Shown: in pieces, positions 17,301 through 20,300 of the stretch
Position numbering within the stretch: the stretch's first letter is position 1
Layout: every line of letters begins with the position of its first letter
Assembly (NCBI GenBank): GCA_002269645.1
Contig: NIVC01000303.1
Location: 627,331-691,330 of the forward strand
Source: Macrostomum lignano
Lineage: Eukaryota
DNA length: 64,000 nucleotides
Direction of reading: 5' to 3'
Position numbers and translations under genes: made by a program
Notes under the pieces: generated by a model
Told to the model about the DNA's origin: nothing
What the model saw: the letters and a program-made list of their open reading frames with translations, nothing else
Databases searched by the model: none

Positions 17301-20300
17301 GGCAGGGGCACGGCTGGGGAGGGGCACGCGCAAAGCCCGGCCGGGGCCAGACCCTGCCACGCCCGCCAACCCCCCCAACCAGCCCCAAAGTGCAACGCGC
17401 CCTGCCAACTGACAAGGGCGCATGCACTACACCCTCCCCTCCTACAAAAAAAACAGGGCGGAGCTCGAACCACGGCGACTGGGATTCCAAATTTTTTAAA
17501 TAACAAAGCAAAAAAAATCAAAAACAACAAAAAAACTGGAAAAAAACTAATGCAAAGGGGAAAAAGAAAAATGGTTGCCGCAAAAGAAATATGAAAAAAA
17601 AATACTGGTTTTCTGCACGCAAGTTCGTCAGAGCAACCACGGGGCACGGAATAGGCTTTACATCAAAGCTGGCGCCACAGAAAACCATCGCAGGTGGCCG
17701 GCAGGACGCGCAAGTGGCCGGCAGGACACGCAGGTGGCCGGCAGGGCACGCAGGTGGCCGGCAAGACGCGAAGGCGGCCGGGCGGGACGCGCAGGTGGCC
17801 GGCAGGACGCGCAAGTGGCCGGCAGGAAGTGCAGATGGCCGGCAGGGCACGCAGGTGGCCGGGCGGGACGCGCAGGTGGCCGGCAGGACGCGCAAGTGGC
17901 CGGCAGGACACGCAGGTGGCCGGCAGGGCACGCAGGTGGCCGGCAAGACGCGAAGGCGGCCGGGCGGGACGCGCAGGTGGCCGGCAGGACGCGCAAGTGG
18001 CCGGCAGGAAGTGCAGATGGCCGGCAGGGCACGCAGGTGGCCGGGCGGGACGCGCAGGTGGCCGGCAGGACGCGCAAGTGGCCGGCAGGACACGCAGGTG
18101 GCCGGCAGGGCACGCAGGTGGCCGGCAAGACGCGAAGGCGGCCGGGCGAGGCGCGCAGATGGCCGGCAGGACGCGCAAGTGGCCGCCGCAGAAGCCGGCA
18201 GGAAGCGCACTGGCGCCGCACAGCTGCTGAGCCATTCCCCCAGGAAGCTTGACCCCACTAGCATGCAAATAAACCCATACAGTACGAGCGTAACAACATA
18301 CGTACAATTAAGCAGAAAATACGGTATGAATCGGAACTGGGCACCCTAGCGAACCCGAAGTCCAGGGAGACCGACGCAGCTTTTCAGGACCTCGAGCAGC
18401 CTGCCGGGCCGGCGCAAACCGAACAGCGGGATGAGCTCGTGACAGAGCTGTCGGACGAAACAATCAAAACTCTGCCTAGACCAGTAACGGCGGCCTGCTC
18501 TCTGACGCTTTACCGGAGCGATATCTCTGCGGATGAAGAACAACGCCTGCAGCAGGACCATTGACAGTGCGCTCCTCGGTTCTCGCTGCGAGTCTCGAAA
18601 CAGCCGTCTCATAGCCGTGAGCACTGACACGATTCCGTCCGACTGTCCAGCCAAAATATGCTTCATCAAACGATGGCGGAGCTGACGCGCAGCTGCCGAT
18701 AACGACAGCTTTTCATCATCCCATATTGCTCCCGACGCGCGATGTGAGACAACCTCCTTGCTTTCCGGTACATCGATCTCCATAGCTTCTGACTCACTAC
18801 TTCCGGAGGAGCCATCCGATGCCAGCAACTCGTCTTCTTCTTCTGTGTCGATGCTACACTCATCCGACTCCTCGCTCTCATCGTCGTCCGAGATTAGAAT
18901 GTAGCCATCCGCTTCGTAATCGTTCCTCTGTCCCTGTCTCCCCTGCCTGAGACCAGCTTCCTTGCGCTGAGCTTCTTCAACTTCTCGCCTTTGCTGTACT
19001 CCCTCTTCGATGTCCGCCGGCATTCTTACACCAGTAGGAGGTATGAACGTCATTGCGAAGGTTACAGCCTCGTCATACGGGATTGATTTATCGCCCAACT
19101 GGTCGTACATCGCTCGGCGATATGGACACGATAGAATTCTACCAGCAGTCTCAATTTCTTGGAAACGGCGTCCTGCGAGTTCCTTGTCCGGGTGCTTGTC
19201 CGGGTGCCAGAAGAGCGCTAGCTGTCGATAGACTCGCCTGATCTCGGCACGTTCGGCTGTGTGTCCGACTTGGAGGACAGCGTACAAATCCATCTGCAAA
19301 ACAACGTACTCAAACCTGCGACACACTGTCCCTGACTCCAGATTTTACTCCTGCTCCCCTCTTGCCAGAGCGTCATCTCCTCGGACCGTGGCCCTGCATC
19401 GTAAAGTCCCAGCGCAAATTCGAGTTTTCACCGGATGCCAGTCTGAATACCCTCCACCGATGCATAGATTTTGTAGGCAAAATTTGATTCTCGTCAAAAC
19501 TTCGATGAAGATGCGATTAAAATGACTTAATGACGCATTAACGAATTTCTTGAATGACGCATTGGCGAACTGCTCGTACTCATGATGAATGATGCATTGA
19601 TGAAGTACTCGTATTTATGATGAATGACGCATTCGCGAAATATTTTTCTGGCTTTTAACGATAATCGCATATGAAACTGATGAGACTTCACGATGACGAG
19701 TAACCCATTAGAATGTCACTGGCTGGCCGTAGCGATCCGGCGGCCGTCGCAACCTTCCGGACCTTCGAGGCTCAGGTGCAGCTTCCACCGGGTTATGAGT
19801 AGGCTGCGGGTCGTCAACCAACTCCATCTGCTCTTCCAGCACCTCGGCGACTTCCTCGGCGTCCTGTGGCGGCATCAGTTGAGGCCGAGTCCAAGTCTCG
19901 CATTCCGCCTCTGTCTCCGAGTCCGTCTCGTCGACCACCTCCGGCGGTGCCGCGGTCCTAACTGGTGTTTCCAGGGCGGCCGGTCGAGCGAACTTCCGGA
20001 GGTTGTTGAAGTGGACGAACTTCGACTTTTTACGATTTGACGGGTTTTCCACTTTGAAGAGCACCTCGGATCTTCTTTCGAGCACCTTCACTGGGCCGAG
20101 CCAGCTTACGTGAAACTTTGCGGCTTCGTCTGGTTTCAGGGCGGGGCTGTAGACGAAGACATGGTCACCCTCCTGAATATCGGATCCTCGGGTTCTTTTA
20201 TCGTACTGGTCCTTCTGTCGCCGCTGATAAGTATTCAACTGCTGTCGAGCAGCGCGATGAGCTGTCTGCAATTTGTCTTCTAGCTCCTTGACGAAATTTA

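Follow-up and report, generated by a model that had tools for sequence, protein, structure and literature searches.

A J-domain protein gene between the integrase and the polypurine tract of a Ty3/Gypsy retrotransposon from the flatworm Macrostomum lignano

Does a J-domain protein gene that lies inside a Ty3/Gypsy retrotransposon of Macrostomum lignano belong to the element, and what could it do there? A first-pass annotation of the 64-kb stretch of DNA analysed here (the window) had described an intact open reading frame of 315 amino acids, ORF3, in the same orientation as pol. Both points were borne out: ORF3 is open on the minus strand from an ATG at position 19293 to a stop codon at 18346-18348 and contains no internal stop. 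An in-frame GTG upstream at 19326 would extend it to 326 amino acids. ORF3 shares the frame of the integrase, and three stops and about 410 nt lie in between. Its placement between the integrase stop codon (19708-19710, minus strand) and the polypurine tract (PPT), inside a unit of two LTRs without mismatches and a matching AGTA target-site duplication (TSD), was likewise confirmed. The sequence evidence supports the view that ORF3 is an element-encoded gene, which is neither env nor a recent passenger. It is quite likely that a flatworm-associated Ty3/Gypsy lineage possesses in ORF3 a conserved accessory gene, expressed from a spliced message and coding for a class C J-protein, which would bring Hsp70 to a client. 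A more far-reaching version is tentative, and we lean slightly against it: in this version, ORF3 would be a co-chaperone kept by the lineage for a long time and the first J-protein of a retroelement, its basic domain of novel fold would bind the particle of the element, and its message would be spliced at the ATG, possibly by hijacking of the spliced leader.

Table 1. Features of the Ty3/Gypsy element and its surroundings in the window
Feature	Position	Strand	Remarks
Whole Ty3/Gypsy element, LTR to LTR	16564..27792	-	11,229 bp; based on LTR pair, TSD, PBS-like site, PPT and gene order
Target-site duplication AGTA	16560..16563; second copy 27793-27796	.	both element flanks
3' LTR	16564..17431	-	868 nt, TG...CA
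Polypurine tract	17432..17443	-	12 purines adjoining the 3' LTR
GC-rich 20/41-bp tandem repeats	17669..18234	-	3' untranslated region past ORF3
ORF3, J-domain protein	18346..19293	-	315 aa, stop codon included
Basic five-helix C-terminal domain (aa 200-308)	18370..18696	-	predicted by AlphaFold2 (AF2)
Acidic serine-rich disordered linker (aa 118-193)	18715..18942	-	predicted, pLDDT below 50 (AF2)
J-domain (aa 2-64)	19102..19290	-	Pfam DnaJ; HPD motif 19198-19206
Putative 3' splice acceptor TTGCAG	19294..19299	-	directly before the ORF3 ATG
pol, broken	19708..23491	-	PR, RT, RNase H, integrase (zinc-binding, core and p58-C domains)
30-bp coding minisatellite	23511..24420	-	about 30 units, between gag and PR
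gag	24461..25393	-	CCHC zinc knuckle; listed ORF begins at GTG, first ATG 25381
Candidate 5' splice donor GTGAG	25542..25546	-	leader, between PBS and gag
Primer-binding-site-like 18-mer	25606..25623	-	starts TGG, 3 nt past the 5' LTR
5' LTR, interrupted	25627..27792	-	40 nt + nested transposon + 824 nt
Tc1/mariner-like DNA transposon	25667..26966	+	1300 bp, inside the 5' LTR

The element and its nested transposon

The element belongs to the Ty3/Gypsy retrotransposons (Metaviridae), as indicated by LTRs with TG...CA ends and a TSD, by the PR-RT-RNase H-IN order, and by a CCHC gag, a primer-binding site (PBS) and a PPT (Table 1). Its genes follow each other on the minus strand in the order gag / PR-RT-RH-IN / ORF3. 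Of the Gypsy clades reported for M. lignano (Mag, CsRN1, Gmr1/Osvaldo and Mdg3/Micropia), CsRN1 and Gmr1 proper are presumably argued against by the CCHC knuckle, which is not of the CHCC type, and by the position of the integrase after RT. When the nested transposon is removed, the two LTRs (868 and 864 nt) differ by two gap events and no mismatch; the copy is young because its LTRs carry no substitutions. The element is inserted within a 17-bp minisatellite. No tRNA gene that could provide the primer for the PBS-like site is present in the 64-kb window, and a search of the window for other copies found none. The GC-rich repeats past ORF3 yield spurious ORFs in all six frames. No canonical heat-shock element, which would have linked the element to the published heat-activated LTR families of M. 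lignano, was found in the LTR.

The product of gag matches the Pfam family zf-CCHC with an E-value of 7.7e-8 and the families Retrotrans_gag and PNMA weakly. It is followed by a minisatellite, each 30-bp unit of which encodes a decapeptide rich in Ser, Thr, His and Pro. The Pfam matches of pol to RVT_1, RT_RNaseH, rve and Integrase_H2C2 are full length or nearly so, and a domain-sized deletion is absent. Two frameshift-type breaks, however, divide pol into three pieces in different reading frames, each of them free of internal stops, and the frame changes once more between PR and the repeat region upstream of it. Counted along the frame path, at least four frame changes are required between the start of gag and the stop codon of the integrase, part of which falls inside the 30-bp minisatellite; at most one of them can be a programmed gag/pol shift. 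The frame breaks of pol could be real, or else they could be errors of the long-read assembly.

A Tc1/mariner-like DNA transposon has inserted into the 5' LTR, 40 nt from the inner LTR end; together with its duplicated TA, the transposon accounts for 1,302 of the 11,229 bp of the element. This insertion has perfect terminal inverted repeats of 33 nt, TA counted in, a TA duplication at 25665-25666 and 26967-26968, and Pfam matches to HTH and DDE_3 domains; its transposase gene (25749-26842) contains one frameshift-type break. Since the 5' LTR is interrupted and the frames of pol are broken, the copy in the window is defective and cannot itself function as an element. The earlier description of a Gypsy element with its own ORF3 thus stands as far as the integrity of ORF3 is concerned, but it had missed that the copy as a whole is not intact, with its 5' LTR transposon and at least four frame changes. 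Therefore, the intact ORF3 may reflect the youth of this copy rather than selection acting on it.

Architecture of the ORF3 protein

The N-terminus of ORF3 was annotated as a complete J-domain with an HPD motif, and this assignment is firm: ORF3 matches Pfam DnaJ (PF00226) over the full model (positions 1-63 of 63) with an E-value of 5.5e-18 and 65 bits, at a cut-off of 27.8 bits. A profile of the family matches solved J-domains with an E-value of about 1e-19. The domain is predicted by AlphaFold2 to be helical with a pLDDT of 82-89, and the HPD motif (amino acids 30-32) is located between helices II and III, as in J-proteins. From the intact motif, ORF3 would be expected to stimulate the ATPase activity of Hsp70. 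The designation as DNAJB-like is not supported because DNAJC5, bacterial DnaJ and several DNAJB proteins are found alike among the top solved-structure matches of the J-domain, and because the G/F region and the DnaJ_C match are missing. Where a class B protein would have a Gly/Phe-rich region and DnaJ C-terminal beta-sandwich domains, ORF3 continues after its J-domain with one helix, then with an acidic disordered segment and finally with a bundle of helices, and neither a G/F region nor a zinc finger or a DnaJ C-terminal domain was detected in ORF3 by Pfam. The architecture of its sequence places ORF3 in class C (type III) of the J-proteins.

The first-pass annotation had also proposed that an acidic stretch and an unrecognised helical domain replace the G/F and client-binding domains, and the AF2 models and the lack of a Pfam or fold match agree with this description. 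The linker has a net charge of -23 (amino acids 121-195), and of -24 to -29 in three full-length homologues, whereas the net charge of the C-terminal domain ranges from +8 to +18 in all members of the family. The C-terminal domain is predicted to form a five-helix bundle with a pLDDT of about 85, and a pTM of 0.74 when modelled alone; these AF2 models were built on alignments of only 5-6 sequences. Its invariant residues include RD, within an RRDI-like motif, and GRR-x-W. The domain has no Pfam match, and a fold search against PDB and BFVD returned best hits with an E-value of about 0.5 and TM-scores of 0.2-0.4, mostly to designed helical repeats. These hits were uninformative, and the domain corresponds to no known fold in the two collections. 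A capsid derivative and a histone-binding-like domain of J-proteins were considered and rejected, as no such fold was matched in PDB.

The claim that ORF3 has neither a signal peptide nor a transmembrane segment, and hence is not env, was upheld. The highest Kyte-Doolittle mean over 19 amino acids is 1.33, and the N-terminus is occupied by helix I of the J-domain. An env of the errantivirus type was rejected on the grounds of the absent transmembrane segment, the N-terminal J-domain and the lack of a match to a viral fold.

Relatives, selection and splice signals

To search for homologues, the part of ORF3 outside the J-domain (amino acids 71-315) was compared with 1.84 billion representative proteins. 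Five clusters were recovered, namely a second M. lignano copy and four homologues with 31-53% identity; among these representative proteins, the C-terminal domain is found only in the element-linked family. In a word-indexed homology search, the profile of the C-terminal domain retrieved P0128 only. The second M. lignano copy, P0125 (UniRef A0A1I8G8I7), contains an ORF3 that is 100% identical to that of the window, and its remainder is absent from the window, which suggests that M. lignano has at least two copies. A0A1I8G8I7 is listed in UniProt as a 'J domain-containing protein' of 3375 amino acids from M. lignano. As it matches this element and nothing else in the window, the entry appears to be a chimeric gene model whose start lies in a copy of the Gypsy element.

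The family comprises six sequence lineages: the window, L007/L005 (identical in sequence), L004, L006, L008 and L009. Its sources include the Logan runs SRR31628392, -394, -403 and -435 and a JGI metagenome. The architecture of HPD J-domain, acidic linker and basic C-terminal domain recurs in five sequence lineages other than the window with 30-55% identity, the linker and the basic domain being present in every member for which this region could be read (L009 ends before the C-terminal domain). HPD is kept in all six lineages, and the ORF of the J-protein is open in four; two family contigs carry broken copies. Full-length ORF3 was also compared with a word-indexed collection of 5.8 billion proteins, in which it matched J-domains only, with 40-50% identity and 21% coverage. 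The exact sequence is not on record, neither in the 315- nor in the 326-amino-acid form, and scans of metagenome and viral contigs for the ORF3 family returned nothing.

Whether ORF3 travels with independent copies of the element can be judged from the window and three contigs; four other contigs are uninformative (three are short upstream, and L007 duplicates L005). In L004, L005 and L009, a Gypsy integrase is located 100-325 nt upstream of the J-protein gene on the same strand, and these integrases are 50-55% identical to that of the window. Integrase and ORF3 identities rank alike, L005 being nearer to the window than L004. The J-protein gene thus lies just past a co-diverging integrase, on the same strand, in four independent lineages including the window; together with the second M. 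lignano copy, this is the linkage that the first-pass annotation had asked for. No gene of the ORF3 family was found near the closest pol relatives with long flanks, i.e., L001 (an ENA contig), L002 (Exaiptasia), L003 (Actinostola) and L010 (a JGI contig), and a profile of the C-terminal domain revealed no similarity to the post-pol ORFs of L001 and L010. Therefore, ORF3 is not general to that part of the Gypsy tree.

In every diverged pair of ORF3 sequences, pN (0.30-0.53) is below pS (0.68-0.84). The best-resolved pair, L004 and L006 (dS 1.8), has a dN/dS of 0.24, which is not near the value of 1 named beforehand as a sign of a one-off capture; three other computable pairs, which are nearer to saturation, give 0.16-0.27. 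Synonymous sites are saturated between the deep lineages, and the usable evidence is the contrast of pN and pS together with these four pairs; the comparison of L005 with L007, two identical sequences, carries no information. As judged from these substitution patterns, ORF3 is under purifying selection.

A hexamer of the form [T/C]TG[C/T]AG directly adjoins the ATG of ORF3 in four independent lineages, and a related YAG is located 1 nt (L009) or 6 nt (L008) upstream of the ATG. Positions -80 to -16, by comparison, are at random identity between the lineages (0.22-0.34). The hexamer of the window, TTGCAG, fits the acceptor motif of M. lignano, [T/C]TNCAG, and the spliced leader of this species ends in ATG (PMC8629364). 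The candidate donor GTGAG in the leader fits the donor motif of M. lignano, GT[G/A]AG (PMC8629364); by our own estimate, about 0.45 sites of this type are expected by chance in 230 nt. In LTR retrotransposons, splicing typically gives rise to the messages from which an ORF3 is expressed (PMC5408684).

Possible function and comparison with known systems

Retroviruses, hepadnaviruses and the yeast Ty elements need host Hsp70, Hsp40 and Hsp90 at assembly, reverse transcription and nuclear entry. In all of these, to our knowledge, the co-chaperone is always that of the host. In the M. lignano element, the ORF3 protein would be made from a spliced sub-genomic message, which could be cis-spliced from the donor in the leader, as env messages are; alternatively, the spliced leader of the host could be trans-spliced onto the ORF3 acceptor. 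The J-domain would dock on host Hsp70 and trigger ATP hydrolysis, and the basic C-terminal domain would select the client. Because of the strong positive charge of this domain, the most likely client would be the element's own ribonucleoprotein or particle, i.e., RNA or cDNA with Gag or integrase, although this choice is guesswork based on the charge. The role of the recruited host Hsp70 would then be particle assembly, maturation or disassembly. The part in capsid or RT maturation, or in counteracting silencing, that the first-pass annotation suggested would follow from the known activities of J-domains.

The J-domain could instead be aimed at the host. Complexes of the Rb family are targets of T-antigen J-domains, and the loading of Argonautes with small-RNA duplexes is carried out by Hsp70/Hsp90 and a J-protein. 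By analogy with polyomavirus T antigens, the C-terminal domain of ORF3 would bind a silencing, restriction or chromatin complex of the host, which is dismantled by Hsp70, or ORF3 would compete with the host J-proteins that load Argonaute or Piwi. We regard this as unlikely. The conserved J-domain and HPD motif are consistent with it, an acidic linker beside a basic domain would also suit chromatin or protein targets, and LTR retrotransposons of M. lignano have otherwise co-opted the heat-shock pathway via heat-shock elements in their LTRs (PMC12801592). However, the C-terminal domain bears no similarity to known host-factor binders in PDB, BFVD or Pfam, the LTR of the element lacks a canonical heat-shock element, and nothing sets a host target apart from the element's own particle as the client.

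It is improbable that ORF3 is a C-terminal extension of Pol, in which an intron that begins with a GT at the very end of integrase and reaches to the acceptor would create an integrase-J fusion. Integrase and ORF3 are indeed in one frame in the window and in L005, and in the automatic gene model P0125, the Met of ORF3 immediately follows the C-terminus of the integrase. In L004, however, the two are in different frames, every full-length homologue has its own ATG right at the putative acceptor, and the introns of P0125 carry little weight because this 3375-amino-acid chimeric prediction also reads through tandem repeats. LTR retrotransposons occasionally transduce host sequence, and the window copy is otherwise defective, so ORF3 might be a piece of a host DNAJ mRNA caught once, or a host gene trapped between LTRs, with no role for the element. 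This reading is largely refuted and retains hardly any probability: the same ORF is found past the integrase in three other diverged lineages and in the second M. lignano copy, pN is well below pS, and ORF3 is enclosed by the LTR-TSD unit and precedes the PPT. Moreover, the near-identical host mRNA by which a passenger would be recognised was not found; the 5.8-billion-protein index holds no near-identical host gene, and the best matches, at 40-50%, cover the J-domain only.

If ORF3 is the accessory co-chaperone proposed here, chaperone access can be limiting enough for a retroelement to justify a gene of its own, and a new class would be added to the few non-env accessory genes of metazoan LTR retrotransposons. 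If its message is made by spliced-leader trans-splicing, the transcript of the element would behave like a host operon. ORF3 further offers a domain of unknown fold for which a functional hypothesis can be clearly stated. The first-pass annotation knew of no described Gypsy lineage with such an ORF, and no description of a J-domain-bearing LTR retrotransposon was found in the searchable literature.

Several known systems resemble ORF3 in part. The large and small T antigens of polyomaviruses possess an N-terminal HPD J-domain, which borrows host Hsc70 and is joined to a virus-specific client-binding part. ORF3 shares this design of an element- or virus-encoded J-domain with its own client-binding part; however, polyomaviruses are vertebrate DNA viruses, the proteins are unrelated outside the J-domain, and no specific sequence relationship between the J-domains was seen, the best matches of ORF3 being the cellular DNAJC5, DnaJ and DNAJB. 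Cellular class C (type III) J-proteins likewise combine an HPD J-domain with an unrelated client-specifying domain and lack the G/F, zinc finger and DnaJ C-terminal domains, but ORF3 is encoded inside a mobile element.

Among retrotransposons, Vesta, Juno and TelKA of bdelloid rotifers carry extra family-specific non-env ORFs after pol, which are lineage-acquired and usually spliced (PMC5408684). These ORF3s code for GDSL esterases, DEDDy exonucleases, coiled-coil or transmembrane proteins (PMC5408684); in contrast to the flatworm ORF3, none of them is related to J-domains or chaperones, the host phylum is another, and it is the flatworm protein whose C-terminal domain has no known relatives. 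CERV of Cer1, a Gypsy-type element of C. elegans, is also an accessory protein that serves the RNA or the particle of its own element and not cell entry; unlike ORF3, it is reported to act in nuclear export of genomic RNA, and a J-domain is not reported for it (PMC10309623). In plants, some LTR retrotransposons possess extra ORFs or have captured domains (PMC7264820), and Gypsy elements of orchids contain an ALKB-type demethylase domain (PMC9289625). These represent similarly rare fixed gains of cellular-type domains by a Gypsy lineage, but they concern other domains, another kingdom and often other positions in the element.

In M. lignano itself, LTR retrotransposons of the Mag, CsRN1 and Gmr1/Osvaldo families, which belong to the same superfamily, contain HSF-binding sites in their LTR promoters (PMC12801592). 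The text of that report makes no mention of a DnaJ or J-domain ORF. ORF3 fits the pattern of LTR families tapping the heat-shock system in this host; however, the other families do so through promoter sites, whereas the present element encodes a co-chaperone instead.

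The Gypsy element and its ORF3 protein

In ORF3, the J-domain is intact and conserved, and it is linked to a basic domain that is likewise conserved and has no known fold. Residues 2-64 match Pfam DnaJ over the full model (E=5.5e-18; 65 bits, cut-off 27.8), and the HPD motif is located at residues 30-32. In the AlphaFold2 model, the confident J-domain is followed by a long helix (residues 93-119), a disordered region (residues 118-193) with a net charge of -23 and a five-helix bundle (residues 200-308) with a net charge of +17, which reached a pTM of 0.74 when modelled alone. 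Fold searches with the C-terminal domain revealed nothing convincing (best E 0.47 in PDB and 0.63 in BFVD; TM-scores 0.2-0.4), no G/F region, zinc finger or DnaJ C-terminal domain was found in ORF3 by domain search, and a transmembrane segment is absent (19-aa hydropathy maximum 1.33). The first-pass annotation had described a full J-domain with HPD, an acidic stretch and an unrecognised helical C-terminal domain, lacking the usual G/F and client-binding domains and any transmembrane segment, all of which holds. Its label "DNAJB-like", however, is not specifically supported, since the ORF3-family profile matches the solved structures of DNAJC5, E. coli DnaJ and several DNAJB and DNAJA proteins (E 1e-19 to 1e-13), and these matches are confined to residues 2-70.

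Features of the window
Feature	Position	Strand	Remarks
Gypsy element, whole	16564-27792	minus	
17-bp minisatellite	16475-16563 and 27793-28136		Gypsy insertion site; continues on both sides of AGTA
ORF3	ATG 19293, stop 18346-18348	minus	315 aa
Gag-pol	19708-25393		
30-bp tandem units	23511-24420	minus	coding
20/41-bp tandem repeats	17669-18234		3' untranslated region
Candidate donor GTGAG	25542-25546		in leader
Tc1/mariner-like transposon	25667-26966	plus	1300 bp, in Gypsy 5' LTR; TA at 25665-25666 and 26967-26968
Transposase of this transposon	25749-26842		
Non-LTR (LINE-type) retrotransposon	56115-58870	minus	56-64% GC
ORF with Rap/Ran-GAP domain	1687-2367	minus	probably host gene exon
Micro- and minisatellite arrays	15091-16000, 14211-14730, 29486-30000, 28706-28950		units 8-bp, 14-bp, 20-bp, 20/40-bp

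The LTRs of the Gypsy element (868 and 864 nt) start with TG, end with CA and differ by two gap events and no substitutions. The element is flanked at both ends by an AGTA duplication, and a 12-purine tract directly adjoins the 3' LTR, in agreement with the LTR pair and matching target site duplication noted earlier. An 18-mer beginning with TGG lies 3 nt past the 5' LTR and may correspond to a tRNA-Lys-type primer site; no tRNA gene was found within the 64-kb window. Gag contains a CCHC knuckle, and the order of the pol domains is protease, reverse transcriptase, RNase H and integrase. The gag zinc knuckle and the protease are separated by a coding minisatellite of about 30 tandem 30-bp units, unusually long for a gag-pol region, which is translated into a decapeptide repeat rich in Ser, Thr, His and Pro. 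The repeats in the 3' untranslated region are GC-rich and give rise to long but spurious ORFs in each of the six frames. ORF3 shares the frame of the integrase, from which it is separated by three stops and about 410 nt.

Two features had been missed by the first-pass annotation. A Tc1/mariner-like transposon interrupts the 5' LTR, 40 nt from the inner end; it has perfect inverted repeats of 33 nt, is flanked by duplicated TA and encodes an HTH and DDE_3 transposase with one frameshift-type break. Both insertions are very recent, because the transposon entered after the Gypsy element, whose LTRs remain substitution-free. The 3' LTR has five extra bases compared to the 5' LTR, located beside the matching TA site. 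Moreover, at least four frame changes are required between the gag start and the integrase stop, of which a programmed gag/pol shift could explain at most one. Pol is split over three frames by two frameshift-type breaks, with no stop within the pieces and no domain-sized deletion. The combination of zero LTR divergence and several single-base frame breaks suggests that the breaks in gag-pol and in the transposase may be long-read assembly indel errors rather than decay; the LTR differences, too, are gaps only. In one reading of the ORF frames, all gag-pol changes go in one direction, like single missing bases, a uniformity that the shortest frame path does not require.

Conservation and linkage of ORF3 to the integrase

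To prevent J-domains from swamping the result, only residues 71-315 of ORF3 were searched against 1.84 billion representative proteins, which revealed four clusters with 31-53% identity and the Macrostomum lignano model A0A1I8G8I7. The full-length homologues P0130, P0127 and P0129 (336, 309 and 351 aa) are built alike: an HPD-bearing J-domain lies at the N-terminus, the linker is acidic (-24 to -29 per 60 aa) and the C-terminal domain is basic, with a charge of +8 to +13. The five members in which this domain is present span +8 to +18. Invariant C-terminal residues in all members include RD, in an RRDI-like motif, and GRR-x-W.

The upstream context was drawn from three contigs, L004, L005 and L009; L006 and L008 do not extend far enough, and L007, the intact twin of the broken L005 copy, repeats the L005 spacer. 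L004 encodes an integrase 54% identical to that of the window, with an ORF3 homologue 245 nt downstream on the same strand, and L005 an integrase C-terminus (55% identical) followed by a homologue. L009 contains a pol with an integrase 50% identical over 96% of its length and, 100 nt downstream, a J-domain ORF (Pfam 2e-16) that ends at the contig end; its hhalign match to the family (97%) runs beyond the J-domain. The question raised earlier, whether ORF3 recurs with other elements, is thus answered in the affirmative. Lineages rank identically by integrase and by ORF3 identity, as expected if ORF3 is inherited with the element. L005 and L009 both derive from Logan run SRR31628394, so two clearly distinct Gypsy families with a J-domain ORF after pol are present in one sample, indicating that several families within a single host carry the gene. 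The ORF3 family was not found in the pol relatives L001-L003 (integrase 43-47%, tBLASTn) and L010 (47%), and the post-pol ORFs of L001 and L010 are unrelated, with no profile similarity to the ORF3 C-terminal domain. The ORF of L010 (3549-4304; JGI metagenome 3300040954) follows a related Gypsy pol and encodes 251 aa that include a hydrophobic stretch and match no Pfam family. It may be another kind of accessory gene, or an env-like one, located where ORF3 lies in the other elements.

ORF3 could also have been a passenger transduced once from a host mRNA, to which it should then be nearly identical. No host gene this similar was recovered: in a 5.8-billion-protein index, the best matches cover the J-domain only, at 40-50% identity. 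A one-off is largely ruled out by the homologues at 31-53% identity and their integrase linkage in three contigs. In all diverged pairs, differences per site are far fewer at non-synonymous (0.30-0.53) than at synonymous positions (0.68-0.84), the latter being mostly saturated. The dN/dS ratio, proposed earlier as a check, is well below 1, with 0.24 in the best-resolved pair, L004 versus L006 (dS 1.8), and 0.16-0.27 in three other pairs that are closer to saturation. That the frames are open, the HPD is preserved and the orphan domain is conserved at such divergence points in the same direction.

Outside the J-domain, ORF3 shows 100% identity to residues 570-812 of the UniRef entry A0A1I8G8I7, an M. 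lignano "J domain-containing protein" of 3375 aa, which comprises protease, reverse transcriptase fragments, integrase C-terminus, ORF3 and tandem repeats of a Gypsy copy. It matches positions 17689-23428 of the window with a few residue differences in protease/reverse transcriptase and integrase; the remaining ~2300 aa have no match in the window. The model reads through 3'-UTR-type tandem repeats of another Gypsy copy and probably represents an automatic prediction that is chimeric and lies on a second genomic copy of the element. This identity makes M. lignano, or a very close relative, the most probable source of the window.

Expression and possible function of ORF3

The ATG is immediately preceded by TTGCAG in the window, CTGTAG in L004, CTGCAG in L006 and TTGTAG in L007/L005, with a pyrimidine-rich run before each hexamer. 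TTGTAG is found one base farther upstream in L009, and CTCTAG six bases upstream in L008. Upstream identity is random at positions -80 to -16 (0.22-0.34) and reaches 0.40-0.73 at -15 to -1. In M. lignano, cis and trans acceptors are CAG and [T/C]TNCAG, donors are GT[G/A]AG, and 30% of genes receive a spliced leader that ends in ATG (PMC8629364). The hexamers abutting the ATG thus probably represent a putative splice acceptor, which a sub-genomic message would need. Its 5' partner would be either a donor in the leader, where the candidate GTGAG is unremarkable alone, or the host spliced leader, whose terminal ATG would by construction be in frame with that of ORF3.

J-domains with HPD stimulate ATP hydrolysis by Hsp70, and the remainder of a J-protein picks the client. 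On this basis, ORF3 may be an adaptor through which host Hsp70 reaches a client held by the basic domain. The charge of this domain favours a client containing nucleic acid, most simply the element's own particle; chaperones are known to be needed by retroviruses and hepadnaviruses for assembly and reverse transcription, which serves as the precedent. The main rival is a host target, e.g., a silencing or restriction complex, for which T antigens provide a precedent. Of the earlier interpretation as an Hsp70 recruiter, the conserved, element-linked gene is borne out by integrase linkage and selection; the mechanism, Hsp70 recruitment included, is still one that we infer.

Known accessory ORFs and other features of the window

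Non-env ORFs are known from other metazoan LTR retrotransposons, including bdelloid ORF3s, described as GDSL, DEDDy, coiled-coil and transmembrane types (PMC5408684), and Cer1 CERV (PMC10309623); captured domains are also described in plant LTR elements (PMC7264820, PMC9289625). The M. lignano catalogue lists 137 LTR families and, in its main text, does not mention a J-domain ORF (PMC12801592). Some of these families have heat-shock elements in their LTRs (PMC12801592), whereas no canonical one was found in the window's Gypsy element. In the literature searched at title and abstract level, no J-domain-bearing LTR retrotransposon came up, and the text of the relevant retroelement papers contains no relevant mention of DnaJ or the J-domain. 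The first-pass annotation likewise knew of no such Gypsy lineage. The J-domain ORF3 is real, conserved and apparently undescribed; accessory ORFs are known in LTR retrotransposons, but a J-domain function appears to be new.

Elsewhere, two adjacent ORFs with similarity to endonuclease/exonuclease/phosphatase (weak) and reverse transcriptase (E=2e-29) form the non-LTR retrotransposon, and the Rap/Ran-GAP domain was detected with E=7e-17. With several long micro- and minisatellite arrays, the 64-kb window is extremely rich in repeats.
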